A stretch of DNA of 64,000 nucleotides from Oikopleura dioica (taxonomy: Eukaryota; Animalia; Chordata). Each line of letters starts with the position of its first letter. Within the stretch, counting starts at the first letter, position 1. The stretch lies in NCBI GenBank assembly GCA_907165135.1, contig OU015568.1, positions 13,144,001 through 13,208,000 of the forward strand. Reading direction: 5' to 3'. The translations under genes and the position numbers were made by a program. The notes under the pieces are model-generated. The model saw only the letters and a list, made by a program, of their open reading frames with translations, made no database searches and was not told the DNA's origin. This document shows, in pieces, positions 4,111 to 22,780 of this stretch.

Positions 4111-4377
4111 GAATCTAGGACAAGGGATTAGCAGGCCGCTAAAAATAGAACGCGGCAGCGGAGCCTAGTCAACGGCAGCAGAGACTCCCAGGAAACGGCG
4201 GAAGGTGTCACAGGCGCGCGAGAGCATCTAGATTCAAGCGGGTGCCCCGAAATCACGCAGGTTCATTCCAAAAGGTTATAGCTTGAGGCTAAAACCTTAA
4301 ATTGGGAAACTTATATTAGAGACTTTTTCTCAGCAGGAGCATTACCAATAAGACTCCTACCTGATTCAAAAAGACTC
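4111..4377 (+). repeat. Split direct repeat A1 (267 bp)
   Basis: Identical by eye to 18272-18538; begins GAATC and ends GACTC. Confidence 0.97.
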
Positions 4378-4692
4378 TAAGGTAGACCATCAATCGATAC
4401 TACCGCTTATTTCACCTAAAGTCCAAGGACTATAAAAAAAAAAAAGGGGGAATTCCCTTCTTCAGAATCTAGAAGCGTATTCGGCCTCTTTGACTCACCT
4501 CTCAGAGCACGGGTTTCCTTCGAAATCGTCGAACGCTAAACCGACCCACCTTGGCTCCGCCAATCAGGTGCGCCGCGATTATTTCTTAAAAAAAAAAGAG
4601 ATTCAAACTGCGAGGAAAAAGAGAAATGAGCCGTTTCACTGCCGTTCCAGAATCCTTGACTCTCTCATCTTTTAAAACTCCCTTTTCAGACC

Positions 4693-7600
4693 ATGATCGA
4701 GAAAGCTTTCCTCGAGGCAGCCGAGGATTTTGCCCCGAAATGGGGAATAGCCCTGGATTCTGACCCGTCCAAGCCATTGGAAAATTCTGAAAGGAGAATC
4801 CAGACTCTGAACGAGACTGTGACCAGGAAAGGATCTTAAGCTCTCTCAGATTCTTAACTTCTGAAATCTTTTAATATGAAGAGAGTCTTATCCATCAAAA
4901 GAAATTCCCTGCTGCTTTCGAGTCAGGTGAACTGGAAAAGAATCTCACGCACATCCACAGCGAAGCCAAAGATTCAAACAAGGCTGATCAGACTCTACGT
5001 CCCGGCGGACGCGAATGAGCCACTCTCCAACCACAGGCTGGCCTTTGATCTTCAAGCCCCTTCAAAAGCGAAATTCAATTTCGCGGAGCTAGCATCCTGG
5101 ACAAAAATCATCTTCACTTCACCCATGGGTAAAGAGTCACTTTGGGCAGCGAACCCGCGCAACGAGCCCAGCTTCACTCTCGAGCAAATTGCTGAAGAAA
5201 TAGCTGAAGCAGAAAATGACTCCCCCGAAGATTGGAGCCTAGAGTCGAAGCCATTTCCCTTCAAACCGCTGCTCAGCCCAACAAAACTCCTGAAAAAAGA
5301 TGCCTCAGGCATGAGCGTAGAACCAAGCGTCAACATTACCGACTCAGAGACATTGGAGGAACTCCTGAAAGCCCTGAACATAGAGAAAGGCCCGTTAAGA
5401 ATCTTGGCCCGACGAGGAGACACACCAGCTTCAAAAGCCGCCCCAAAGCCTGACGAGAAGGGCAAACTCTATCCCACCAATGTGATGGAAGAATTTTCAA
5501 AATGGAACAAGCTGGTGAGCCAAGACTGGTTCCAAGCATGGGAAGACTCTGAAAACCAGAATGTTCTCAACAAGGGTTTCTGGCACCATGTCTGTCTCCG
5601 AGTAATCATGGAGGACAAAATCAAGGCTCAAGCAAATTACGAAAGACCTGAATTCCCGGATGAACACTGGCTCCAGAGACTCTTAAAAAAGGGACTGGAA
5701 GAAATCTTCAACGGACTCAGTTGCACAGAAGCAGACGCAAACCCGGCGGAGTTCTTTGACTCACTCAAACAAATGGAAGCGATCAACAGCGACTGGCGCG
5801 AGATCTGCCACCAGGAGAACGCCTGGTTGACTCTCAAGAAATACGGTGAAACGAAATGGGCAAGAAAGGAACCAGCAAATAAAAACAGCTGGATTCTGGA
5901 TGTTATTGGTGAATTCAGACTCGAAGACTCCGAACAACCGGTTCAGACTCCATTATCAAAAACCCTCACGCCACTAGTACTTCACCTAGCTCACCGACAG
6001 ATCTCAGAAGACTCAGTCATAAGCCAAGACGGAAGCTGCGAGATTATGCTGACTCAGTGGCACATAGAATGGCTCGAGCTCAAAAACAAGAAATCGCTGA
6101 AAAAATGGATTGAAGCAGCAGCAAGAAAGGTTGTCCCCATCAACACAACCGCCAGAATCAAAGAAATTGGGGAAGGGGATTCACATTGGATAATGTGGAT
6201 TCCATACAAGGTGATTCCGCAACTGTGGGTCTTCAATATTGGGAAAGATCAAATGCATCGAAGGGAGAAATCATTGCTCTCACTAGCAGCTCACCCAGGA
6301 CTCGCTCCGGAAGAATCAGAAGCGCTAAAGACTCTATCAGCCCAACCATGGACCGAAGAGAACGTCCGGAAATGCATCAGACAATTCCAAAAGCCCACCA
6401 GAAATTTCTACGCGTCAGGAAAAGCCTGCATTGTGGGAGTCAACCGCCCCTTCTCGACTCAAAAGGACATTCTCGAAATCATCGGGAAAATAGTCAGAGA
6501 CACAAAAGCTTGCCCTCAGTCCCGCTCAATAGAGCACAACCTCGGAGTCCTGACAGCTGGATGGAACTGGACAAGTGGCAAAAGATTCAGCCCAAACTCG
6601 ATTTTAAGATGCTTCATAGACAAATGGACTCAAAAGAGAGAAGAGATTTCCAAAGTGCCAAGACTCCAATTCCAGTGCGAAAAACTGGAAAAACGGAAAA
6701 GATCCTGCGAATGGCCGTTCTGCGGCGAAGCCGATGGAGATTCAGCCTGGTGCAGCAAACACCAGGAAGCACAGGAGATCAGAGAACTCAGACAGCCTCA
6801 ATGCACGGAAAGCTGCATGTCCAGAAATGGGATGTTCCAAAAAGGACTCTCAGGAAAGCGTCTCGAGATCGGAATCTCCAGCGACGAGTGGCAACAAATC
6901 TATGTCAGACTCTCAGAAGCCTTCAAAACCCCTAACCTAGCAGACCTTGACGCTGAGCTCATCCAAACCATCCAGAACACCACTGTTCACGGTTTTGACT
7001 CAGTAATAGAAGCATGGACATCGACAACGATCCTCTTCCAAGGGCAGAACGACTCCACAGCAAGCTTCAGAAAGCTCGAGGACTCCGAGAAATGGATAGC
7101 GAAAAGGCCACGTCAGGAGAAGCCAGAAGCGGCGGGAATCGTCATTTACCACGCTGGCCTTGCAAGATGCGGCAAAAAGTTTGACGCTTTCGTGGTAGGA
7201 AACAAAACGGCCGGAAGGAATCAGCACTTGGAGAATCTAGCGAAAGAAATCTCCAAGAAATCAGGAGATAAATGGCTCGAAGTAGCAGAGCTGATCAGCG
7301 AGCACACAAGATTCAAACACACGACTCTGCTCCTACCTTCATACGAAGACGCAAAAGAACTCCGACGGGCCTTGGTCGCCTGGGCAGCACCGTATGTTCG
7401 ATTCGTTACTCAGACTCTGGAAAAGGGCTTCTTATCGAACCTCAAAGGAGACCGAAATCAACGATATTCAGGATTCTGGGAAGTCTTCTCAATGGCTTGC
7501 GATGGAGACTATGAATCTAGAATCACACCTTGTTGGGGCCACCCAAGAGTGGCAGAATTCATGGCCAGAAGCTGCAACAACCTTGGGACAGCGAAAGAAG

Positions 7601-7872
7601 GAATCCAGAAAGTGGAAGGACTCAGAATCAGAGCCAACAGAACAACTTGGGAAGACGCGGAGTCAAAAAGACACAAACTAATGCCAAATACCCCTTTCTC
7701 GACTCACCTCCGGGACATCTTGCTGGACGGAATCAGAGCCGGAGAAAACCTCGACATGGAAGGGAACGAACGAGCCGGAGCAGAAAATTTCTTCCCCAAC
7801 GTCTGGACTCAAACACAACAGACTCTCGAAGATCGGATGGCACGACTAGAGCTCCTTAAAGCCGACAACTAG
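4693..7872 (+). CDS. Element gene A: ~1000 aa orphan protein with a Cys/His cluster
   Basis: Uninterrupted 998-codon ORF 4876-7872; probable short first exon from ATG 4693 (preceded by TTTTCAG|ACC), junction unresolved; motif CEWPFC-x9-CSKH; AATAAA near 7920. Confidence 0.8.
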
Positions 7873-8519
7873 ATTCAAATTCAGGAACGGACTCAAAGAT
7901 AAAATACTTTTAGCGTCAAAATAAATAAAAAATTGAGTCAAATTAGCCACCCCAGCCAAAACACTAGAATCAAGGAACAGGTTTACATGAATCTACCGAT
8001 TAAGGCAGCTGAGCGAGCCAAATTAAAAAAAAAGAAGAGAAAAATCTTATTGTAAACCTTCAAAAACAGCCAAAAACCCTTCCTCCTCTTCTTCTGACTC
8101 CCTACTGCCATCTTCTGGAATCCACAAAACGCACAAAAAGAATCCATTCCAGGCCAGGTCCAAGATATTTAAGCATAAAGAGTCAAAATAGCATTTTAAA
8201 ACAAGATCCGGGACCGTGGGAAAGTCTTTCCGCGACCCGAGAATCGGGGGCGCTGATTGGCTGGCGCGCGCGCCAATGGACAAAGGACGGGATCAAAAGC
8301 CAAATTCTCAGAAATTTTTCCATTTTCAAAGAATCAAGGATTAAAATCCCAAGAAAAAGAGAATCTCAGACGCAAAAGAAGCCAAACCAAAAAGAAAAAT
8401 TTAGCTTTTATTCCTGACTCGAAAATTGTTTCTAGATTCCCTTCCATCCCAAATTCTCCTGGCGCCAAAAATTTTTCCAATCCCCAGACTCTAAAACGAA
8501 ACTTTTTTCAGACTCAGAA

Positions 8520-11115
8520 ATGCCAAGAGACGCAGAAAAAGTCCAGATGCCCAGCGGGGATGAACTAGAGAGACTCCGAAACGAAGCTGGAATCGTCCAA
8601 GACCCCATCGGCGACGAAAACTTCTGGAGACAGAGAAAGTCGGCAATCAGATTCGACCCGGTGACGCAGAGACCGAACGAAAAGAAGGGCCGAATGCTCA
8701 ACCGGATGAGACGCAGAATCGCAGACAGATTCACGGATCTGCTGGAACAGATTCTCGAAGGAAAGGGTCCTCTTAATTTCCCAAGAATATTTAAAATAAA
8801 AGAAAAAGCTTTGATTAAAACTTCTTAAAGAAAAAGAAGGAAAAGAAATGACCCAAATTAAAGGATTCTCCGATCCAAACAGGCAGATGAGTCTCGACGG
8901 CTGGCAACTTGCGATCAACGGCGCTTCGAACGTTCTCTCGGATCTTATCCGAGAAGAAAACGGAAAGTTCAACGAAGACGACCAGAATCAGTCAGACGAG
9001 AGTCTTTTCTACGGATGCCTCAACACTGCCAAGACCACCATGGACATCCCACCGCTCCTCAACGTCGTCTACGTCGACAAAGACCGCCAGATTCCAGAAG
9101 GAAGACTCCCCGCCTACCAAGAGAGAGTTTCAGCTATCAAGGAATGGGTTCAAAAAATTCTAGAACTAAAAAACAAGAAACTTAGTACGCCTAATAAAAG
9201 GAAAGAAAAAGAACCCGAAATAAAGTCCAGAGCGGATTTCCTGTTCAGGAAAGATAGACTCCCAAAAAGAGGCGAAGACTCCCTCGAGTCCTGGAAGGAG
9301 AAGCGAAGAGATGAGTACATCAAAGACGGAGTTCCAGAGGACATCGCCAGAGTCCTGACCCGTCGAGACTCAGGAGTCATCGGTTGGACGTCGAGACGAG
9401 ATGGAACCTGCCAGACCGACAGTGTGGACGCTCAGCAGGCCAAGACTCAGCAGACTCAGACCAACTCAGGGACTGGTTTCGAAAACCCGAAACAGAAATA
9501 TAAGACTCAAATCAGTCAAAACTTGACTTCATAAATTCGGAAATCAAACCATTCAAAGACTCAAAAGACTCCGAGACTCAAACCGAGATGTCCAGCACCT
9601 CGATGGCGACCCAAACATCAGCGCCTGCGACGGAAACTGGAACAATTAGCGACACAGACTCAGAAGATTCTTTCAACGCACGCTCAGGAAAGGGTTTTTT
9701 GCCGGAAAAATAATCCCTTAAGACACTAACCCAGTTTTTTCACCATATATACAATAAGCCGGAAAAAACCTGAGAAAAGATCCAAACCAGTTCTTCCCTC
9801 CAGGCTACCAACGAAATGTGGCGCTGACGGATCAAGACTCCGGCTCCGACTCCGACGACCAAGCGATCAGAGAGTCCGACGACGAGGGAGACAACCAGGA
9901 CTGGAACCGACGCACCGATACCCTCTTCGCTTCAGCAGAAGAAGAGGCAGAGGCAAAAGAAAGAAGCGCGAGAATCGCCAAAGAAATGGAAGAACGCCAG
10001 GGCCAGCCACTGTCGGACATCATCGAGGAGTCTGAAAGCCGATCGCTGGAAAGAATGGCTCAGAAAGAAGAGGCGGAAGCTCAGCGACGAACTCAGAAGG
10101 CGCGCATCGACAGACTCAAGCAAGAAGCAGAGGCAGAAGCCCAGAGAGCAGCGGACAAAGCCAGAGCCAAAGAAGCCTTGAAGATCCAGATGAAGAGACA
10201 ACTGGACGAGAACACCAGAATCCGCCGGGAATACGCCGAGCAAATCCAGCGCGAAAAAGAGGCGAAAGAAGCTCAAGAAAGACGCATGGCTCGAGACAAG
10301 GAGGCAGAAGAAAAACGACTCGCTGCGATCAAGGCTGCAGAAGAAAAAGTCCTCACAGAGCCGAGAATTGGAATCAGACTCGTCGCGGAGACCGGAGCCA
10401 AAGGCAACTACTACTACCTCTCGAAGAAGGAATCCAAGCTGATGGAAAGATCCGCAGGAAAGGGCCCTTAGACTCAAAACAGTAGACTTCAAATCTAAAA
10501 ACTCTAAGAATCTTAATCCCAAACCAAAAAGAAAAAAGTCTTTTCTCACAAAACTTACATATCAGGGCCCCTTTAAAAGTTCGAGACATGCTCGACAACC
10601 GAAGCATCAGCAACTTCAACGAGGTCAAGCAAGCCTGGTTCAGCAGCACCGGACTCCAGAAGTTCAAAGACTCTCGACTCCCCGGCCACCGCCACTACAA
10701 ATACAACAACAGAAGCAGCTGGGAAATCAAGGAGGGAACCACGGAATGGAGACTCGACCCAATTGACTACCTCACCAAAGAAGAAAGAGCTGTCATCCAT
10801 TATGTGGTGGAGTTTTTAAACTATGAAGGAATCAAACGAAGATTCAAAGAAGCCATAGGTAAGACACACAAAATATAGAATCAAAAAAAAAGTAATAACC
10901 AGCAAAATAAGAGTCATAAAAACTTATGCAAATCTTTAGACTCTGGACTCCTCAAGCCAAAGAAGCTGGACGTCATCCTTCTCTTCGCGTACAAAATCTG
11001 TGGAAGTAACCTGGTCCACTACATGCGCTTCATCTTCGTCCGACTCTACAAGCTCCACGAGATTCCCATCCCTCCAGTGCACTCCGACGCTGCACCAAGA
11101 CCACCCAGATACTAG
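8520..11115 (+). CDS. Element gene B: ~702 aa, 6 exons, acidic linker plus E/A/K/R coiled coil, function unknown
   Basis: Exons 8520-8766, 8864-9475, 9559-9693, 9804-10463, 10580-10858, 10940-11115 join in frame (2109 nt); four GT-AG introns and one GC-AG intron. Confidence 0.7.
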
Positions 11116-11381
11116 AAGACTCAAGAATACAAACTGCCATGAAAAAAAAAAACCTCATTGATAAAAAACTGTTAAACTGACTCTTACTTCCCACTGAAAA
11201 AAAAAAGACTCTTTCACATTTTTAAATCAAAATTGACAGAAGCTGTGCTTAATAAATTAGCCCGATCTCACTAGAAGATCCTAGACTCTTTCTTGACTCC
11301 AAAATGAAGAGCATATTCAGAACCGTAAAAGAATAAATAATAAATACAAAGAAGCTTAAACTTTTTCGCTTTTCAGACGCA

Positions 11382-12850
11382 ATGGAATCGCAATATCTAA
11401 CACAAAAAGAAGCGCCTAATGCGCTAGAAATGCCATCGGATTCAGGGAGCGGCTACAAGAATCAATATTAAAATAAAAAGAAACTTAAAAAAGAGGCCAA
11501 AAAAGCCCTAAGCAGGCCTAAAAATCCTAAGCCAGTATAAAAGAGGATTCGAATGCGGAAGCACCCTCAGACGAACCATCCCAAGACTCATCCCCAGCAG
11601 CAGATGCAGGTGCAGCCGCGGGCGAAAACCCAGCGCAGATAGAACACTCAAGCGTCGACTTAGAGATGCTCAAAGGACTCGTCTGGGACATACAAAATAG
11701 TCTCAACACGAACGCAGCAGTCCCACCAAAAAGAATCCCATGCTACGGTTCGACTCTCGCCGAGAAATTGACGAATCTCGCAGCTGAAGCAACCAAGATC
11801 ATTGCAGAGTCACAGGAAGTGTCCAATAGCATCAGAAAGATTCTACAAGAAGCTGACAACGAGGGCCTCCAAGGGGCTCAAATGCTGGAAACCTTCCGCA
11901 CTATTGCCATACTGGCCCACAGCCCTTCGATCGGGATCAACCGCCGTCTAGCCTCAACCAACAAAGTCGACATAGAAAACATCCAAGACACGCTCGAACA
12001 CACAGTCAGACCCCTCGTCTCGGACCTTATGCGACAGGTTTACGAGAAAAGCGTCTATAACTCGGACGAAATCGCATTTTGGGCAAGAATGATGGAGCCA
12101 TTAGAAAGAGACTCGATCTCCAAACCGGATCTCCTCAAATTGGAAGAGGGTGTGGCATGGATTCTCCTAAGACTCTGGGGAGAGCCGGCGGAGGCCATCT
12201 TCAGAATGATTCTAGCGCAATGTAAGCCCCCAGAAGAATCGAACTCTCGGATATCGCCAAGACTCACAATGGTGGCCCACATTTGGAACTGCAGATTCAA
12301 GAAGATGCTCGGACGCCCGCCGGCGGAAAGACGAGCTTCTTTTGCAAACGAAAGGCAACTGTGTGCAACAATAGCGAATGCGATCTTCGGAGAAATCCAT
12401 TTCCAATTGACCAACACCAGATGCATCTTCCCAAGACTCCTCTCGAGTGCAGCCAGATCGGCCTGGACTCATTTGAACACAATCTTCGGGCCCGCGAACC
12501 CACTTAGCCTAACGCTCAGAAATTTTCTAACGAACATTGACGCGAATCAAGATTACACTGCGTGGGACGCGATTGGCACGCTGCGCAAACTATGGCCGCA
12601 TAGAGACGCAATTCCAGAGGCACAATACAAGACGCTGAACCTCAACGACATCGATAATCGGCTAGAAAAAGGACTCGAAGATCCGTCCTCACTCTACGGC
12701 ACCACGTACGAGAAGCTCTTCTGGAAAATTCCGATCCCAAGAAGCTATGAGTCTACCTACCCAGTCGCAGGACCCAAAAGAAAGAGACAAAAAACAGAAG
12801 ACGAAGAGCTGGAAGGAAATAGAGGCGGAAATGAAGATTCTCGCCAATAA
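11382..12850 (+). CDS. Element gene C: ~450 aa orphan ORF directly upstream of and in frame with pol
   Basis: ORF 11666-12850 is open upstream to ~11531; likely first exon from ATG 11382 (after TTTTCAG|AC), intron near 11450-11535 with an unresolved non-canonical donor. Confidence 0.7.
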
Positions 12851-15261
12851 AGGAGTCTTCAACAGACAAAAATCCCAATTATCTACCCTGTCACCATAAG
12901 CAACACAATCACAAATGGCCCAAAAACTTTACCAGAATGGAAAATCTACGAAACAGAACTGCTGCATAGAGTCATCAGAGTCTTAAACAACGAGGAAAAG
13001 CCAGATTGGGACAAATTAGCGCTGAAGAAAGAATCAGATTTCGTCTCAGGACTCTGGACACACAACAAAGACAACTGGAGGACACTTATCCATCAAATGC
13101 CAGAGAAAATACGGCCACTAATTTATCACTTTGTCCACGCGGGTGCCGACCTATTCCTGAACCTCAAACGGATCCCCCCGAAGAAACCGGAAAGATTCAA
13201 ACACAAAGAGCTGGTGACAATATGGAAGAGAAACGAAGCCAACACGGAAACTCTGAAAAAACTGGGTGGAAATTTTAAAACCTGGTACAATGATAGACTC
13301 AGACTCTCAAAATTCGTGCCACGCCCTTATGAGAAAATCGGTAAACGATTCAAGACTCTGTCCGTCCCGAGCCAAGAAGCAGTGAAAGAAAGGAACGAAG
13401 AAATCATCAACCAAATAACCGAGTGGTGCGACATGGGATCAATCTCAAGACTCACAGACTCGAAAAAATGCTGGATTCAGGCAGGATTTGTCCTCGTCGA
13501 TAAGCCAGGAAGGGAAACCAGAGTCTGCTGGAATGGTGGAGTCCTCAAGCCGCTCCAACTCTACACCTTTCCCTGCAAATTAGAAGGAGTCGGAGCAGCG
13601 ATTCAGATGCTAAAAAAGGGAGACCTACTCTTCAAATTCGACGATAAGAAGGGTAAGGAAACTCGGCCAAAAATCTATCAAATAACACCGAAGCCCTAAC
13701 CACACCTTAAGGTTTCCACCAGCTTCCGCTCAGCGAGGAAAGCAGGAAAATGGCATGCTTCGAATGGGGAGGCCAAGTCTTCAGAAACAACATCCTCGCC
13801 TTCGGAATCCCGGCAGCACCAGGAATCTATCAGCTCATGAATCTCTGCGGAGTCAACTTCCTAAGGAAAAATGGAGTCAGGATAACACTCTATCTAGATG
13901 ACAGACTCTTGGCAATCACACCAGACTCTGATAAAGAACGAAAAGAGCTCCTCACAGGCGAGAAAATAAGCAAAGAAGTCTGGGCTACAGTTGCGACTCT
14001 AGTGGCCCTTGGCGGATACGTCAACATAGCCAAGAGCACATTTACACCCACCCAGAGAATCGAATTCTTGGGTTTCATTCTGGACACAACCGAAGAAACT
14101 GTTGAAATACCGTTGCAAAGATGGGAAGCCCTCAAAACCCTTATGAAAGACGCAGAGGCCAAGAAAACGATCCAGACAAAAACGCTAGAAAGAATCAGAG
14201 GCACAATGGCGAGCATGGCAGAAGTACTGACAAACATGAGGATGCTTATTCGACAAACAACGATTCTCATCAGCCAGGCATTGAGAGAAGAAAAAGAAAC
14301 CTGCGCCCTTACAGAAGAGGTCAAAGAAGAATGGAGACTCTGGAGCCTGCTAGAAGAGAAAGGGCTCAAAAGACACTGGACAAAATTAAATCGCCAAGAG
14401 ACAGGCCTAATAATTTACACAGACGCATCCTCTCACGCGGGGGCCATCGTTATTGAGCAATGGAACTTAGAAGAAAGATTCGCTTGGGAACCAGATCTGG
14501 CAGACAAGCACATCGGGATCAAAGAGGCAGCGGCGATCCAATTCACTCTGGAATGGTACGGGCAGAAGCTGAAAGACAAAAGAATCCTATTTTTGTGCGA
14601 CAATGATAGTGTAGTCCAAGGTGTAATAGCCGGAAGCAAAGATCCGGAAATGAATAAGATTCTAGTCAGAATCTGGACTCTAGCGCAGCGCTCAAACATC
14701 GATATGAAAGTCGATTGGGTTAGCACCAAAAAACAACTTGCAGATGGCCCCTCAAGGAATTTAGACTCGCGAGAACAAAAACTAACGGCTGACGGATTCG
14801 CATATCTTCAATCTCACCTCTCGGACTCCTTGGACGTCGACGTGGCAGCAACGGTAAATTGCCTAAAGACTCGAACCAAATTATTTAACAAAATTCAGCC
14901 ACTGAACGCGAAATGCAGAGACTTCATCACGCGCAGAGAGACAAGAGGAGCTTTTGGAAAAGATTTCCTTAATTTCCCGATTCATGAGCTCATAGGAAGA
15001 AAGCTGTATGCATTCCCGCCTCCCAAAACAGCCCACAGATTCTATAACAGACTCGTAGAAATAGCCACGCCCTGGGCATTAGTTGTCCCCTGTTTCGAAT
15101 CAGAACCACTGGTAATCACAGAAGCCAGAATCAAGGGATACAGAATCTTCGACATCCCGGCTGACTCAATCCTCACCCCAGCAAAAGTTAAAACAGCCGA
15201 CGGCTACTGGAAAGTGGCATCTAACATCTCAACCATAAAAGTCGCCACAAACAGACTCTGA
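12851..15261 (+). CDS. DIRS-type pol: reverse transcriptase - RNase H - N6-adenine methyltransferase-like domain (3 exons)
   Basis: Removing intron 13653-13711 gives FKFDDKKG|FHQLPL...FEWGGQVFRNNILAFGIPAAP; YLDD; RNase H YTDAS...KEAAA...CDNDS...ADGPSR; removing in-frame intron 14854-14898 gives DVAAT|PLNAKCRDF...YAFPP...LVVP, the DIRS MT pattern. Start codon unclear (first in-frame ATG at 13097). Confidence 0.92.
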
Positions 15262-15447
15262 TATACCGATTCTGCCCCCTTTTCACACTCGACTCAAAAG
15301 GCCAGCAAGAATAGCCACTTCTGGCTCGTAGATTCTCCTAAAAAAAAAAAAACACCACTTACCCAACCTCACCACTATACTAAACTAGAAACAAAAGCCT
15401 TGGCGGTAACTCCTTCCTTTTTTTCAGACTCGAAATCCTTGGAAAAA

Positions 15448-16783
15448 ATGTCGGATCAGACCAAGACTCTCTCCAAGCTGCTGGCGGACCACACCAAGCT
15501 CACAGAGCAAGAGGCGAAGACACGAGCGGCAAGAGTCCAAATTTCAAAGGCCCAATTCTTCGAAATCGCTCAATCCAAGACGAGAACGGAAGAGGCGGAC
15601 AGACTCTTCATGGAAATCGAAGACATCAAGAAGGACATGTTGACTCACGACAAGTTCACCGACTCCCTCATCGTAAGTAGATGACTAGAATAAAATTCGA
15701 AACCCTCACCGCTTTTTCATAGGCGGAAATCGCGGAACTAGAGGCCAACCGCGACAAGAGTCTTGCGATCAAGGAAAACGAGCCAAACGCCAAAAAACGG
15801 TCAGAAGAAGATAACAAATTCTACGACCGTTGGAATCCAGCGGAGTTGGAGTCGAAAATCCGCCGGCTGATTGCGGACAAGATGGAGCGATACAGCCTCA
15901 AGGGATCCATGTTCGCCCAGATCAAGGCTCGAGAGTCAAAAATCGCCGAACTATCTTCAGGCGGCTCGGAAACTTCGGCGGTCTTCAAAGAAGTCGACCC
16001 GCTCACAGGAGAAGAGTCTTATTTCATGGTAAGTCCAGAAATTCAAAGGAAAATAACAAATGCACGCATACCAATAAACAGAAATCTATATAATTCCACT
16101 CAAAACACGCTTCAGACTCAAATAGGCACAAGCAACCTGCCTCAGGACGACGGCGACTCTCTTCGGGAAATGGGCAAGGAATTCCGAGCTTTCGTCTCAG
16201 ACGCGAAAAACCAGCGCACCTTCAAAAAGGACAAGCTCATGCGACTCCTGGGCAACTACAAAAGAGCCATGTCCCCAGAATACCCGGAGCGAGCAATCAT
16301 CGAAAGCATCTTGGACGAACTGATCAGGATGCCCGATATGACTCGAAAAGACGCGCTGCTCTCACTCACGGTAAGACTCGTAAAATAGCAACCCTGCTTT
16401 TAAAGCGTCGCATTCAGCCGCTCATGCGCCCGAACGTCCGACACAGCTTCGATCGCGCACTCACGATGAACACCAACCACCATGTCTTCAAGAAAATGAT
16501 CGGCAACCCCTGTGACGGCTCTGAAGACTGGCGGTCGGAAAAAGACTCGAAACCGGGTCGAGGACGCCGAGGTGGACACAATAACGGCGGTCAATCCAAA
16601 AAGCAAAAAACTGACCACCAAGGTGACGGCCAAAAGGCCAAGGACGGAGACAACGAGACTCATTCCGGAGGCCGCGGACGAGGCCGAGGCCGAGGCCGAG
16701 GTCGCGGAAGAGGCCGAGGCCGAGGAGGAGGAAATGCTGGTGGCGACACCAAGAAATTCCAAGATCAGGGTGGAGTCGAATAA
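15448..16783 (+). CDS. Element gene D: ~387 aa coiled-coil protein with a C-terminal RG/GR-repeat tail; Gag-like nucleic-acid chaperone candidate (4 exons)
   Basis: Exons 15448-15672, 15723-16028, 16116-16370, 16406-16783 join in frame via GTAAG...AG introns (50, 87, 35 nt); tail GGRGRGRGRGRGRGRGRGRGGG. Confidence 0.75.
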
Positions 16784-16943
16784 ACATCGCCACTGAAAGA
16801 AGCGCAACAAGCCAGAAATCTCAAACTAGCCGACTATAGACTCTCAGCTTTTTAGGACTCTTAAAAAAAAAACTGCTTCAAATGCTTAAATTCTCAGATA
16901 GATCTTCAAAGGAAAGGTCTCAAATTTTCAATTCTTAAGAACC

Positions 16944-18130
16944 ATGACCTGGCTCGACTACAAGAATCTCCTGGAACACTGGGAAGTAGCAGAAGCAATG
17001 GCCACGTTCAGTTACGACGAAGCCGAAATCGACGACGTGATTCAACACTTCCTCGACAGACTCCTCACAAGACCGACTCTCAAGGCCTACGCCTACGAGA
17101 AAGGGATCGTAACGATCCAGGACGTCATCGTTTCTCGACTCAAAAAACCGCTCACCCCGAAGCAAAAACGGAAAATAAAGACCTGGTGCGAGCACAGAGC
17201 GCGGGAGTCAGCAACCCAGACTCTGCAATACCCAAAGGTATAGAAAAAAAGGGAGACCCAGCCCGAAAAATAATACCCCTCCAAGCAAGCGGAGGTCGTC
17301 GACGAGCCCGAGGCAATCCGACTCTGGGAAGAGCTCCTGAAGACAAATAAGCCCAAGCCAAGAGAAGCGGCCATCGCTTTCTTCATCTGCTTTACGACGG
17401 GAGCAAGAATGAAAGAAGCGCTCAATCTCAGAGTCGAAGATCGAGAAGTCGTTACCGAAGACGGAAACGAATTTTGGCGATTCCATATTCGATGCAGCAA
17501 AACCGATCCGTTCTGCAAGCGAATGGAAACCCTCACCATCCCTATGGACATGCGGCATGGAGTCCCACTCGGCCTAGAACTTAGAGCCCAACTCAGGGAT
17601 CGAGATTCAGGTACTTATAGCACTTATTACTCAAGACTCAACAAGAAACTTTTTTAGGCCTTGTTCTCAAGACGCTCGAAGGCCATACTCGCATCGCATC
17701 TGACTACCTGGCGCGCTACGGAGCCAAGGCAAAACTGTCAAAAAAGGTAACCAATCAAGGAAGAAAACAAACCTCAGATTAATAAACGTCGTAGGTCTCG
17801 GCGCACACGGGAAGAGTCAGTTTCTACATCGAGGGACGCCGAACAGGCTTATCACAACAGACTCTAGCACACACACTCCGTTGGGCACCGGGAAGCTCCA
17901 TGCCAGACTACTACGAAAGGTGCTGGCTTGAATGTAGCAACTCAGGAGCGCCGGTCAGCGTGGCAAAATCTAGAGCCAGAAAACGAAACGACAGCACTAG
18001 CAGCGACCAAGACCAACCAAAGGTACTAACATTTAAAAATCCAAGAATCAATTATGAAAGGCCTTAGAGTCAAGAACGACCAGAAGCAAGTCAAAAGCCA
18101 AAGAAGCCGAAAAACACTGCTGAAGCATAA
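16944..18130 (+). CDS. Tyrosine recombinase, ~332 aa, 5 exons
   Basis: Exons 16944-17237, 17286-17610, 17658-17746, 17795-18022, 18068-18130 (GT-AG introns of 48, 47, 48, 45 nt) give TTGAR...RCSKTD...SAHTGR...LRW...PDYY, i.e. the R-K-HxxR-W-Y catalytic set. Confidence 0.92.
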
Positions 18131-18226
18131 AAAGAAAAAGAGGCCTTTTTTCCACTTTTAAACAGACTCGAATAAAAAAAAAAGACTCATTTTTACGATT
18201 GATGAGAATAACAAGAATGGTAGGGA

Positions 18227-18271
18227 GGGAATATTCCCATTACCATTGTTATTTATGCGTGATTATAATAC
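18227..18271 (+). repeat. Split direct repeat B1 (45 bp), abutting A2
   Basis: GGGAATATTCCCATTACCATTGTTATTTATGCGTGATTATAATAC is identical to 18670-18714; starts with the 12-bp palindrome GGGAATATTCCC. Confidence 0.95.
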
Positions 18272-18538
18272 GAATCTAGGACAAGGGATTAGCAGGCCGC
18301 TAAAAATAGAACGCGGCAGCGGAGCCTAGTCAACGGCAGCAGAGACTCCCAGGAAACGGCGGAAGGTGTCACAGGCGCGCGAGAGCATCTAGATTCAAGC
18401 GGGTGCCCCGAAATCACGCAGGTTCATTCCAAAAGGTTATAGCTTGAGGCTAAAACCTTAAATTGGGAAACTTATATTAGAGACTTTTTCTCAGCAGGAG
18501 CATTACCAATAAGACTCCTACCTGATTCAAAAAGACTC
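18272..18538 (+). repeat. Split direct repeat A2 (267 bp)
   Basis: Identical by eye to 4111-4377. Confidence 0.97.
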
Positions 18539-18669
18539 ACCCACCCACCATCCCTGAAATAAGCAGTACAAGTAGGGTAAATCGAGCACACGCCCTACAT
18601 ACTGCCCAGTCCTAACCTTAGAATCTCAGCGGAGCTTCTCTTACCACAGTATTGTAATTGCGCGTGCTC

Positions 18670-18714
18670 GGGAATATTCCCATTACCATTGTTATTTATG
18701 CGTGATTATAATAC
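18670..18714 (+). repeat. Split direct repeat B2 (right terminus of the element)
   Basis: Identical to 18227-18271. Confidence 0.95.
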
Positions 18715-20929
18715 TTTGATTGGTATAACTAATGAGACCACCGAAACTTGCGTTAATAGTTCTAGCAGGTGCTCGTAAACTCAGACTTGACTTTTATGAC
18801 GAGAGACTTTCGATGGATCTCTCTAACATTGTGTCATGCCATCTTACTTTTTGTAAACAAAAAAAAATAATTTATGTTGTTTTACGATTTATCAGCTGCT
18901 CTTGGAGAGTTTCGAATTCGATATCTTCTGCTTATAAAAGCTGTAAAAATAGATATAAGTTGTCAGAAGATTGCAATCAAAAGGTTAAAAATGATAAAGG
19001 ATCAAGTAAAGGTGCACCTCAAAAACCTCAGCTTGGCACAAGCTTCTCAAAGTTATACTTCGGTTTCAACTCTTAAGCTCTCCTGGGTATCCAATGTGCA
19101 TATCGGACCTTGCCAGGTAACTTACCCCTCCCACAAGAGCTACCCAATCTAGGTAACGTTGAGCGCGCTTCTCGTGCGGTAAGAAGCTTTCAGTCTTATT
19201 GAATGCAGCTGTAATGAGTATCAATGAACAGAAAAGGAGTAATCTCTGGCAAACTGAATAATTGCCCACAAATGACCGAAATCTCCCTTTTCTATTTTGA
19301 ACATTCTTTTCTAAAGCATCGAGTTTCGTAAAATTCTAAAGAGTTGGAATCGGACTCACGTGCTTGTCGACCAACCGGTCGTTTCAAACGCCGCCCATTA
19401 TCGATTACGCGTCGGATTAATACGCCATTTCAGAATTATGATCTCACAGCCGTAATCGAAGACTTGCTTATCCCTTTAACGTCAAATGTAAGGAAAACTT
19501 GATCCGTTTGGAAGTAAATCCGAGGTTACCGTAAGCCTAAATTTAAGGATCGAGTCTATTTATTCAAGGACAGCAAGAATAGTATAACGGTAAAAATTAA
19601 AATAACGCTGAAGGCTCATAAAAGAACGGATCAGAATGATATTTATCTCAAACGAAAAAGAAAGAAACAAAATACGATTGTTTTTGTCTGTGTTGTTAGT
19701 CTACCTTGAAGGAGATTCGAGCTCCTGCGTAATGAGCATGTAAGCTTGGAGACGGAAGTGGTCAGCTCAAAGTATTTCCAGCAACAGGTTCCCTAAGAAC
19801 GCGCCAGGATCATCTGAGACACTTCAGAATCTCGTGATTATCAAAATTGAAAGAATGTGTATAGAGTTTCATTTCATGAACCATTCTAGCGCAATTAATT
19901 TGGTGCGAACTTGCTGTTCACAAAGCACAAATCTCGCAGCAAATCTGGCAGCACGTGACTAGTGGCCTCCGATAGAAGGTGTTAGAATCGGCGCAGAGAA
20001 GAAGCTTATCATTATCCTGGTCAATACAATAATTCCTCTTCGAGTCTTATCCGGCACTAGCGTTCATCCTGCAATTCGTTAGAAACGCGTGAGATTTTTA
20101 TATCCGCGCTCTTGACGAAAATCTCAATTATTGAAGCAGCAATAACCTATCTTCTATCATCATCATATAGTCTATGCTTTCTTGGTTTTATTGAAAGAAA
20201 TATTTGAGAAAATAGGAAAATATTTAAATCTAATAGTCTAATAAAAGAATTACTTAGAATCTTTCTTTCAGATAATATTCAAAGAGGTATACGTTCAAGT
20301 AATTTTATAGGATTCAAATTATAAGAAATTAATTTCGGAAACAATAATTTAAAAATTTCAAACGAAATTCGACAAATGAATAAGTGTCAAAACAGAGATT
20401 TGCTATATTGATAGTCCATCAATGATAGAGAAGAGTTTTTGAATAAATTAATTGACAGTGCATTGAACTTTCTGAGTTCTTCTGAAATGCTCTTTCAAAG
20501 AAGTTGAACTTTCACGGGTTCAGGCTTTATCAGAAGAATCGTAGATGGCAGTCGCGCACTGGTGCTTGTGGTGGTGCGCCACCACCATTTACTACTCTTC
20601 AGAAAACAGAAGGAGAATAAAAAACTAACTCAATAATTTGCATTTCTAAAATCGTTAATCAACTCAAGTTCCACGATGAAGTGGAGCCTCTTTTTGCTTT
20701 TTGCTCTGATAAATTTATCGGAAAGTCTTACCAGACGAGAAAGAGAACAACGGGTAACATAAAGAAAATGAAAAATCAATAAAAAGTAAAATATTGTTAA
20801 GAGAGCTAAAAGAAGACAAGCGAAAAAGGAGAAACAGGACAAGAAGAGCCATTTGTTTGGATACCACGGTAATGACTGTTCTAACACGAGTTAAACTTTG
20901 ACTTTTCGAAGCCTAAATTTTGCATAGAT

Positions 20930-22780
20930 ATGAATGACCTCGTCGAGAAAAACAATAAGGGCGAGATCTCTCATTTCTTCCAATATGTTTACGGGATAAA
21001 AACGACTAAAAAGTCAACAACCACGACAACAACAACCACTACGAGCAGCGAAAAAACAACCACGATAGATCAGACCACAACGGAACAAACCACAACGGAG
21101 CAAACAACAACATCAGCCGAGACAACGACCGTTCAGACAACAACTTCAATCGACGATGTTAAAACTACGACAGAAGACATCAGGTTTTTGTCTGCAGCGG
21201 AAAAGAAAAAACGGAGAAAAGTAAGTAGAATAGAAGTTTTCATGAGATAACTTAAATTGAACCCGTATCTTATTGATTGTCTCAGGCACAGCGAATGAAG
21301 GCAAAGCAAGAGCGAGAAGCAGCTTCGACTTCTCGACCAGCGACGACGCCAAAGTCAAAAGGTGTCTACAGCAATCTCTCCGACACCGTGAACGAAGTCC
21401 AGAACTAGGTACCCGCTGAAATCTGAGTGGCCATTTTCTGTCTATCTTTACATGCAGTTTTCGGGGGCTGAAGTTTTATACAGTAGATGAATTATTTTTT
21501 TGAGCCAAAAAAAAAAATTTTTTTTTTTTAAAATTTTCACGTGACAAAATTTTCGTTTTAAATTTTGGTATTTCGGCTGTTACTCGTGAGCCTAAACAAG
21601 CCTAAAAATGAATCACATATGAGATGAAAGAGCTCAAAAAATGCTTTCAGAAAATGTGCCGCACTCAACGGCCGGAAGCGGCCGAAAATTTTTAGAGCCA
21701 AAAGATTGCCCAAAAATCAGTGATTTCAGGACAAAAATTGCGTAGGCGGACCTGTAATAATCAATTATTTATAATTTATTACTGAACATTTCATTTGTTA
21801 GGCTCGAGACTTACACCAGACGACTCAGTTTTGAAGTCTGGACATTTTTGTGTGCGAAAGTACCCCGAGTACAAATGTTCTAGAAAATCTTATCGCCGAA
21901 TTTCGATGACCTCAAATGACCCCAAGATGAACTTTTTTCCAAATTTTATGGTCAGACTTGAACTCTATGGTAGTAATTTAGTATACTCACAAAGTTTGAG
22001 CGAAAAATATGAGCGAAATCTACCGTTTAGTTTTTTCAGCGGGTACCTAGTCCAGAACATCATCTTCAGTCTCATCTGGAAGAATCAATTCTCCAACAAC
22101 ATTTTCACGCCCCCTCCAATGCCCGATTTCCCCTCAACAACTGACACTCCCCCGATGGAGTCGCGAATCATTCCTCGGATCCTGCCTGAAGATTTCAACG
22201 TACCAAACAAGGAAACACTCGATTTGATCATGAATTTCGAAGAGAGCCAGGGCAGATTCAATCGAAGACGCGAATTCGAAACTTCTGCTCAGCCAAAATG
22301 CAACGGAGAAGCGCTTCAGCTGAACTTAGAATGCGAAGGATGCCATGTTGGATTCCCCAAACTCGATCTTTGCGTTCGTTTCAGCAGAGAAGACAGTCTG
22401 CGCGACGAGAGCGAATTCAAGGTGAGCCACTCTTTATTCCATCTTGCTCGGATAAAAGCGCGCGAGGAATTTGTTGTTTGCGCCGCCAGTGAGCGTAATT
22501 TAAGACGGCTAGATTTCAAAGCGATTTTAGAAAAAACACCAGCAAACCTGGCGCTTTGATAAATATTCTTTGGGGCCTTATAAAGATTAAAAATCAGACA
22601 TCAACTGTTTTCTAAAAATGACCCTGATTTCAAGGACAATTCTGAATGTCAATTTTAGTGCAAAATCGACTGCGGCCCTGGTTTCAAAATCGCCGATGGT
22701 TTCAACAAAGTCAAGTGTACGAAGGACAAGTGGAAGCATCTGAAGAAGGACGTCAAGGAGAAGACCTGCGTCCGAGTTTA
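20930..22780 (+). CDS. Secreted or surface protein fragment: Thr-rich mucin-like stalk followed by a Cys-rich Sushi/CCP-like C-terminus; true 5' end probably further upstream
   Basis: TTT/QTTTE repeats in 20930-21250; spliced continuation KKRRK|AQRMK...VNE..NIIFSL; last exon CKIDCGPGFKIADGFNKVKCTKDKW...CVRV*. Interrupted by the MITE at 21406-22049. Confidence 0.5.
21406..22049. mobile_element. Non-autonomous TIR element (MITE), 644 bp, in a coding exon
   Basis: TIR TAGGTACCCGCTGAAAA / TTTTCAGCGGGTACCTA; flanking duplication GTCCAGAAC (9 bp, or 7 bp if the terminal C/G belong to the TIR). Confidence 0.9.

Follow-up and report, generated by a model that had tools for sequence, protein, structure and literature searches.

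Retrotransposons coding for a tyrosine recombinase (YR) are regarded as small elements with about three open reading frames (ORFs), to which Ngaro elements at times add an extra one. Among them, DIRS1-like elements measure 3,974-6,283 bp (PMC3266345). In PAT-type elements, described as the Pat1-like form of echinoderms and as Toc3 (PMC4157794), a pol gene with reverse transcriptase (RT), RNase H and methyltransferase-like domains is combined with a co-oriented recombinase, with split direct repeats whose internal pair lies downstream of the recombinase, and with insertion without target duplication; Ngaro and VIPER elements have no methyltransferase domain (PMC3266345, PMC4157794). DIRS1-like elements have been listed for Oikopleura dioica (PMC3266345, PMC2685390), with 4 sequences falling into 2 families (PMC3266345), and include OdDIRS1 (credited to Volff 2004); no giant or intron-bearing DIRS-type element of Oikopleura was reported in the full-text literature found on that topic. 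Here we describe one unit of 14,604 bp at positions 4111-18714 (+ strand) of a 64,000-nucleotide stretch of O. dioica DNA, hereafter the window, which lies at ~13.14-13.21 Mb on the long arm of the pseudo-autosomal region in the Okinawa assembly. We consider it likely that this unit is an autonomous and recently active DIRS-order retrotransposon of PAT-type layout, built of a core of three genes (D, pol and YR) and of four more that are specific to the lineage (A, Ba, Bb and C).

Boundaries, repeats and sister copies

The ends of the element were defined by comparing three insertions in the Okinawa genome, namely that of the window and 2 copies on chr1, at 3.35 Mb (L001) and at 4.06 Mb (L002). 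All three start with GAATCTAGG and end with GATTATAATAC, their flanks are unrelated, and comparison of these flanks showed that target duplication is absent. Composition also sets the element apart, with a GC content of 0.46-0.50 and an AT skew of ~+0.3 as against 0.36-0.42 and ~0 in the flanks. A sequence-only reading of the window had proposed a single 14.6-kb unit of co-oriented genes, far above the size usual for YR retrotransposons, and the termini shared with L001 and L002, the location of all coding sequence on the + strand and a length of 14,604 bp as against the 3,974-6,283 bp of DIRS1-like elements (PMC3266345) bear this out. The same reading had the unit bracketed by 267-bp repeats. 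These are indeed 100% identical, but they are not simple brackets: the second copy (rA2) is internal, a spacer and a further repeat (rB2) lie 3' of it, and the ends are formed by split direct repeats in the order rA1 - body - rB1|rA2 - 131 nt - rB2 (A1...B1A2...B2), a layout that recurs in L001 and L002. Apart from the rA and rB pairs, no repeat match to the element was found elsewhere in the window. Inverted terminal repeats were not found either, there being no inverted match >10 nt between the two ends of the element. Compared with the diverged copy L002, rA1 is 82% identical and the 131-nt spacer 81-89% identical, both without codon periodicity. A 12-nt perfect palindrome, GGGAATATTCCC, heads each rB (18227-18238 and 18670-18681) and is kept in L001, L002 and a copy from the Bergen lineage (L003), which makes it a candidate recombinase site as judged from its sequence.

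The L001 copy is full-length (14,507 bp) and 99.2-99.4% identical to the window's element from end to end. Its genes A, D, pol, C and YR are open, or have models like those of the window, and it differs in length at one place in the B region (90 bp) and, by short stretches, at a few other places. L002 (14,723 bp) is collinear throughout at 43-89% DNA identity. Three Bergen scaffolds also carry copies: in L007, A-B-D-pol-C-YR follow one another in the window's order at 27-61% amino acid identity; in L003, A, a Bb piece, D, pol, C and YR were matched in order and the rB pair is present, the Ba region having no match in this scaffold; and L006 is partly collinear and ends at an assembly gap. The Bergen copies adjoin unrelated genes. 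Identical repeat pairs indicate recent insertion (PMC6681497), and because both repeat pairs of the window copy are 100% identical, the element is young. Together with the near-identity of L001 and three independent insertions without target duplication, this agrees with the earlier proposal of a young and probably mobile element. The 28 substitutions that separate the window from L001 in firm coding stretches are distributed 6/6/16 over the three codon positions (p = 0.03), a modest sign that part of this divergence arose in replicating lineages.

Purifying selection acts on every gene of the element. Against L002, the ratio of nonsynonymous to synonymous substitution rates (dN/dS) ranges from 0.04 to 0.36 over all genes, the pieces of B lying between 0.16 and 0.36. 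The sequence-only reading had claimed a large accessory repertoire, and had named copies without A and B, as expected of a one-off capture, as what would speak against it. A and B are present collinearly in L001, L002 and L007, and A, Ba, Bb and C are collinear in 5 copies from 2 O. dioica lineages. Since diverged copies are collinear and selection is purifying, A and B are not a one-off capture. Judging from these alignments, A, Ba, Bb and C would have travelled with the element since before the Okinawa and Bergen lineages split.

Table 1. Features of the element, in coordinates of the window
Feature	Position	Strand	Basis or detail
Whole element, 14,604 bp	4111..18714	+	Sharp termini common to L001 and L002; flanks differ; composition unlike that of the flanks
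Repeat rA1, 267 nt	4111..4377	+	100% identical to 18272-18538
Gene A	4693..7872	+	Probable 5' exon ~4693-4818, probable GT-AG intron ~4819-4881, then 998-codon ORF to 7872
Annotated tail of A, 126 aa	7492-7872	+	Full ORF A not called in the gene set
Gene Ba, 275 aa, spliced model	8520..9534	+	Gene call at the locus
Gene Bb, 410 aa, spliced model	9588..11115	+	Gene call at the locus
Gene D, 394 aa, unspliced, gag position	11666..12850	+	Gene call at the locus
pol: RT (YLDD) - RNase H - methyltransferase-like	12747..15261	+	Annotated model from 13097, 686 aa; conserved 5' extension
pol intron 1, 59 nt, GTAAGG...TTAAG, phase 1	13653..13711	+	Same codon in sister copies
pol intron 2, 45 nt, GTAAAT...TTCAG, in frame	14854..14898	+	Also in the L002 model
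Gene C, 383 aa, spliced across three frames	15448..16783	+	Gene call at the locus
YR, 332 aa, spliced model	16944..18130	+	Gene call at the locus
Repeat rB1, 45 nt	18227..18271	+	Opens with the palindrome GGGAATATTCCC; kept in L002 and L003
Repeat rA2, 267 nt	18272..18538	+	100% identical to rA1
Unique 131-nt spacer between rA2 and rB2	18539..18669	+	
Repeat rB2, 45 nt, 3' terminus	18670..18714	+	100% identical to rB1

Core genes and introns

The gene models used here are the RNA-seq-guided annotation of this very locus (L005, identical at 100% to window 1666-22850); the Okinawa models were built with RNA-seq hints on a Nanopore-based assembly (PMC8008620). Seven co-oriented models cover 79% of the element. 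Whether the genes are intact after splicing was judged from the database models, including those of sister copies (P0001 and P0070), and from exon-by-exon searches. When substitutions against L002 were counted per codon position along the element, every annotated frame was recovered independently, and repeats and intergenic spacers gave no codon periodicity. Six genes had been read from the sequence, and A, C, D, pol, YR and the B region are all coding; there are seven models at the locus, B being split into Ba and Bb. As to the sizes then given, that of A holds (~1000 aa; 998 codons), C has 383 aa and not ~450, B falls into products of 275 and 410 aa, and D has 394 aa. That the ORFs are intact after splicing agrees with the third-position bias of the substitutions and, on the basis of the database models and exon-by-exon tests, would apply to all frames except that of the pol 5' extension, whose frame relation differs from that in L001 by a single-base length difference.

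The pol product matches RVT_1 in Pfam and contains the YLDD motif. The spliced pol model P0001 aligns without gaps, end to end, over 689 columns with a metagenome protein (P0016) that has RT, RNase H and Dam-like domains, the last of these below the Pfam cut-off. The C-terminal 160 aa of pol align with the Dam-like region of P0016, and Dam-like regions were also seen in P0032 and P0039, all of them sub-threshold. When the PDB was searched with a profile of pol relatives, an RT-containing viral polyprotein was retrieved first, followed by the Ty3 RT and by retroviral RTs. The dN/dS of pol against L002 is 0.07. Relatives of pol were also found on marine metagenome contigs (L008, positions 1-21715, likewise L009 and L010; L011; L012), where an intron-less pol that is 31-38% identical to the window's, together with a recombinase, is set in long runs of co-oriented orphan ORFs. 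L008 carries a direct repeat pair of 55 nt (21166-21220 and 21492-21546) 6 kb beyond the recombinase, and since the 5' end is not reached, its element exceeds 21.5 kb. Comparison of profiles of A and D with the large ORFs of L008 gave no likeness.

Two introns interrupt pol in the window. Intron 1 shifts the frame and splits the RT motif-A region, and it is present with GT...AG borders at the identical codon in five copies (window, L001, L002, L003 and L007), among which its length varies from ~43 to 60 nt and its interior is unrelated. It is with both introns taken out that pol matches P0016 without gaps, and in the metagenome relatives the pol ORF is uninterrupted. Further introns are predicted in Ba, Bb, C and YR from frame maps and from the lengths of the models.

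The recombinase motifs R...K...HxxR...H/W...Y are invariant in four copies, and the YR of all four matched Phage_integrase (best E 1e-4). The dN/dS of this gene against L002 is 0.04. A PDB sequence search with one recombinase exon gave no match.

Gene D is 100% identical to that of L001, 72% identical to that of L002 and 42-44% identical to those of the Bergen copies, with a dN/dS of 0.09. We infer a gag role for D from its position only; gag-position proteins without a zinc finger are also found in Toc3 and kangaroo. The AlphaFold model of D (mean predicted local distance difference test score, pLDDT, 59) is all-alpha, with a core at pLDDT 70-90, and a PDB sequence search with D gave no match. 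A capsid-like nature of D, with an all-alpha core and no match in the PDB or among viral models, is unsupported rather than refuted. At the junction with pol, the stop codon of D and the annotated ATG of pol (13097) are 82 codons apart, and no start codon lies among these 82 in the window copy. This 5' extension is conserved as coding in L002, L003 and L007 and matches the N-terminus of P0016. In L001 and in both Bergen copies, the pol frame has an ATG of its own within the last part of D, so that the two ORFs overlap in the +1 frame. Stop-codon readthrough was therefore rejected as a general mechanism of D-pol expression, and the frame difference in the window is either a single lesion of the frameshift type in this copy or an error at a homopolymer in the Nanopore-based assembly.

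Accessory genes

The genes A, Ba, Bb and C belong to the element, are conserved and are orphans. ORF A runs for 998 uninterrupted codons (4876-7872). Upstream of it, a conserved ORF of 48 codons (4693-4836) corresponds to the annotated first exon of P0047, the Bergen homologue of A; because this ORF is kept and annotated in that way, A probably starts at 4693 and contains one short intron, whose approximate bounds (~4819-4881) are our reading of the sequence. At the amino acid level, A is 60% identical to the L002 copy and 25-29% identical to the Bergen copies (dN/dS 0.15). The HMMER search with A over 1.84 billion protein representatives retrieved 14 relatives, of which all named ones are O. 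dioica proteins and the remainder marine metagenome fragments. No match to A was obtained in Pfam, in a PDB sequence search or in a word-index search. An exact-protein look-up of ORF A also gave no match, as the long ORF is unannotated. The public gene set lacks ORF A, only its last 126 codons having been called here and in L001; L002 has a comparable tail call of 128 aa. The remaining genes of the element were entered in the public annotation as ordinary host genes. AlphaFold modelling of A from an 11-sequence alignment gave a mean pLDDT of 46.6, with a better core around residues 425-560, and Foldseek found no meaningful fold match to this model. The fold check that the sequence-only reading had called for thus returned no match for either A or D.

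The two B genes, read at first as one, are separated by a stop and 53 nt (9535-9587). Two models are also present in L002, and a single model of 676 aa in L001. The spacer between Ba and Bb is the most variable part of the element, and it is in the B region that the 90-bp length difference of L001 is found. Exon pieces of Ba share 57-59% amino acid identity with L002 (dN/dS 0.32-0.36), and Ba had no match in Pfam. The Bb product has a long, charged and helical middle part rich in E, K, R and A and a conserved C-terminal part; its pieces are 56-68% identical to L002 and 37-43% identical to the Bergen copies at the amino acid level (dN/dS 0.16-0.33).

The C product consists of a helical N-terminal half and an RG-repeat tail, and its dN/dS against L002 is 0.07-0.16. 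About 10 Arg-Gly dipeptides are encoded at its end (window 16650-16780), and Arg-Gly runs are common in RNA-binding proteins. Gene C had no Pfam match, and a word-index search with one of its exons retrieved an O. dioica protein (P0070) as the sole relative. The possibility that C is a readthrough extension of pol was discarded, the alignment with L002 being gappy and devoid of codon periodicity between the pol stop and the C start.

Pfam scans of all ORFs and stop-to-stop pieces of the element gave only RVT_1 and the weak Phage_integrase match; no piece matched an integrase or protease family, and no ORF piece contains a membrane-spanning stretch. Because A, C and D have no fold or family match and membrane segments are missing, the description of the element as virus-like, made in the sequence-only reading, is unsupported: likeness to a capsid, envelope, protease or integrase was not found, nor a fold match in the PDB or among viral models.

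Classification, alternative explanations and life cycle

The structural scheme for such elements (PMC4157794, PMC3266345) places this one in the DIRS order, with a PAT-type layout, as judged from its sequence. RT/RNase H and a tyrosine recombinase are joined in one unit that has no DDE integrase and inserted without target duplication, as in the DIRS order, and the split direct repeats are those of the PAT type. The likeness to PAT-type elements (Pat1-like echinoderm form and Toc3; PMC4157794) extends to the RT, RNase H and putative methyltransferase-like parts of pol, the co-oriented recombinase and the internal repeat pair downstream of it. In contrast to them, this element is ~3 times larger, has four extra conserved genes, one of them between pol and the recombinase, and contains spliceosomal-type introns within genes and a unique spacer of 131 nt between rA2 and rB2. 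Like Toc3, and unlike the Pat1-like elements, it has no Gag zinc finger. With DIRS1-like elements, OdDIRS1 included, it shares the (in part putative) domain set of pol, a Ty3-like RT and, in the sister copies, the overlap of pol with the end of the upstream gene; it differs in its larger size and in having neither inverted terminal repeats nor an internal complementary region. OdDIRS1 comes from the same host species and is compared here by the description of its class. A domain homologous to the methyltransferase-like region of the pol relatives follows RNase H, which speaks against Ngaro, the domain call being sub-threshold; Ngaro and VIPER have no such domain (PMC3266345, PMC4157794). A Crypton would consist of a recombinase without RT, whereas RT/RNase H are present here and strongly constrained. 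Long terminal repeat (LTR) retrotransposons and endogenous retroviruses do not fit either, since on the 3' side the 267-nt repeat is internal, and protease, DDE integrase and membrane segment are missing. The element nevertheless resembles the Tor elements of the same host and complex retroviruses in having genes beyond gag and pol and downstream genes expressed from a compact unit, and differs from them in having no LTRs, integrase, protease or envelope-like membrane protein and in integrating by means of a tyrosine recombinase.

Several observations weigh against the assignment to an autonomous, recently active DIRS-order element that copies itself through RNA. The window's own pol has no Dam match, so that the methyltransferase-like label comes via sub-threshold relatives only. 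The gag role of D finds no fold match in the PDB or among viral models, and the zinc knuckle motif CX2CX4HX4C is absent from every + frame of the element. One single-base length difference relative to L001 leaves the window's pol extension in the frame of D, behind the D stop. L002 is decayed, with two in-frame stops in A, a frame change at the D-pol junction and rA1/rA2 that are 98% identical, and an exact-protein look-up of D returned only two near-identical copies (window and L001). The retention of introns sits awkwardly with copying via RNA, and the expression steps proposed below are all ones that we infer from anatomy and gene models.

The kept introns would be explained if the element moved mainly as DNA in a Crypton-like way, either through excision and reinsertion by the recombinase or through an exchange between rA1 and rA2 that releases a circle, with RT as a passenger or rarely used. 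This route accords with a pol intron at the same codon in five copies, with models that imply introns in five genes, with the presence of a recombinase and with insertions free of target duplication. RT/RNase H are, however, among the most constrained parts of the element (dN/dS 0.07), an internal junction such as rB1|rA2 is what PAT/Ngaro models treat as the hallmark of the joining of cDNA ends (PMC4157794, PMC6681497), and the copy number exceeds one, with two near-identical full copies; we thus regard movement mainly as DNA as unlikely. Alternatively, the introns could be artefacts of a gene predictor that bridged frameshifts and stops in a decaying element, and the frequent frame changes and the single-base length differences between copies in a Nanopore-based assembly (PMC8008620) accord with this. 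Intron 1, in contrast, has GT...AG borders at one codon in five copies with differing lengths and unrelated interiors, its removal restores an alignment without gaps over RT motif A to a relative that has no intron, and its flanking exons have a dN/dS of <0.1, which makes artefactual introns hardly credible.

Two further readings concern the integrity of the unit. In one, an ordinary DIRS-type element would harbour A and B as a nested insertion of separate origin or as genes captured from the host: the two are adjacent on the 5' side, lack known domains and evolve at a faster rate than pol. Yet in both L001 and L002 the shared termini enclose A-B-D-pol-C-YR, the Bergen copy L007 keeps this gene order, neither A nor B is flanked by extra repeats, and no relative of A was found outside O. 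dioica-type sequences. The collinear copies and the absence of extra flanking repeats led us to reject a composite origin, to which we assign next to no probability. In the other, an old element would have become a domesticated, immobile gene cluster that now serves the host, in keeping with purifying selection on all genes and with their annotation as host genes. The three insertion sites with unrelated flanks, the intact and identical termini, the one decayed copy and the location of the Bergen copies beside unrelated genes are at odds with this, and domestication appears very improbable.

The preferred reading thus remains an autonomous DIRS-order retrotransposon, and its life cycle can be outlined by analogy with models of PAT/Ngaro elements and DIRS-1 (PMC6681497, PMC7192593, PMC4157794). 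Reverse transcription would use a full-length, unspliced + strand RNA as its template, the joining of the cDNA ends would be guided by the internal rB1|rA2 junction, and the recombinase would insert the product by site-specific recombination, the rB palindrome being its candidate binding site. From the anatomy of the element, proteins would be made from spliced mRNAs, pol would start in the overlapping frame inside the end of D, and the seven genes would be reached either through an operon-like transcript and trans-splicing of the host's spliced leader or through internal promoters. O. dioica resolves its own operons by spliced-leader trans-splicing (PMC6883708). In the Tor elements of this host, env is expressed by splicing or from an internal promoter, which has been shown for this gene (PMC4402516). 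If all transcripts of the element ended at an AATAAA signal seen at about 18166-18175 (~40 nt past the recombinase stop and ~55 nt ahead of rB1), the RNA would be without rB1, rA2, the spacer and rB2, and hence genomic RNA would require read-through, or the signal would serve mRNAs only.

Other retroelements that keep introns are the Penelope-like elements and the Ogre LTR elements of legumes. The present element is like them in that an intron is kept despite copying through RNA, and differs in that they belong to other retroelement orders, whereas in the present case the RT domain is interrupted by an intron and more genes than pol are concerned. An element so rich in introns would have to protect its unspliced RNA from splicing, and the RG-tailed C and the other accessory proteins may, as a guess, be candidates for handling this RNA. 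Spliceosomal introns kept across deep divergence, one of them in the RT domain, raise the question of how genomic RNA is spared in a splicing-proficient host. More tentatively, and with doubts outweighing our confidence, the element could be the first characterised member of a giant, multi-gene YR retroelement lineage of marine plankton with an operon-like organisation, in which one transcript would act as both genome and pre-mRNA, cis- and perhaps trans-splicing would give seven mRNAs, and A, Ba, Bb and C would protect the unspliced RNA or direct it to reverse transcription. In the metagenome relatives, co-oriented orphan ORFs extend over >21 kb, a hint that accessory repertoires of large size are common in the clade. 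If this were true, a retrovirus-like division of labour would have been reached independently in the DIRS order.

To our knowledge, the genome of O. dioica is the most compact known among free-living animals, and it is in this genome that 14.6 kb and seven genes are kept under selection. Four of these genes are orphan families without relatives outside Oikopleura-type sequences. The element is a natural case for the study of accessory-gene gain by retroelements. There is also a bearing on annotation, with genes of the element listed as host genes and the 998-codon ORF A uncalled.

Rfam and tRNA scans of the window gave no match. The neighbours of the element are an ankyrin-repeat gene on the minus strand (2088-2842) and a gene for a 220-aa product (18991-21408), and it occupies the intergenic gap that separates them. 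Positions 19000-64000 of the window are densely packed with + strand host genes, among them those for a Dna2-like helicase/nuclease, a SET/Pre-SET methyltransferase, an LRR protein and RMC1, as well as a PX-domain protein, a histidine phosphatase, RIC3 and COX15.

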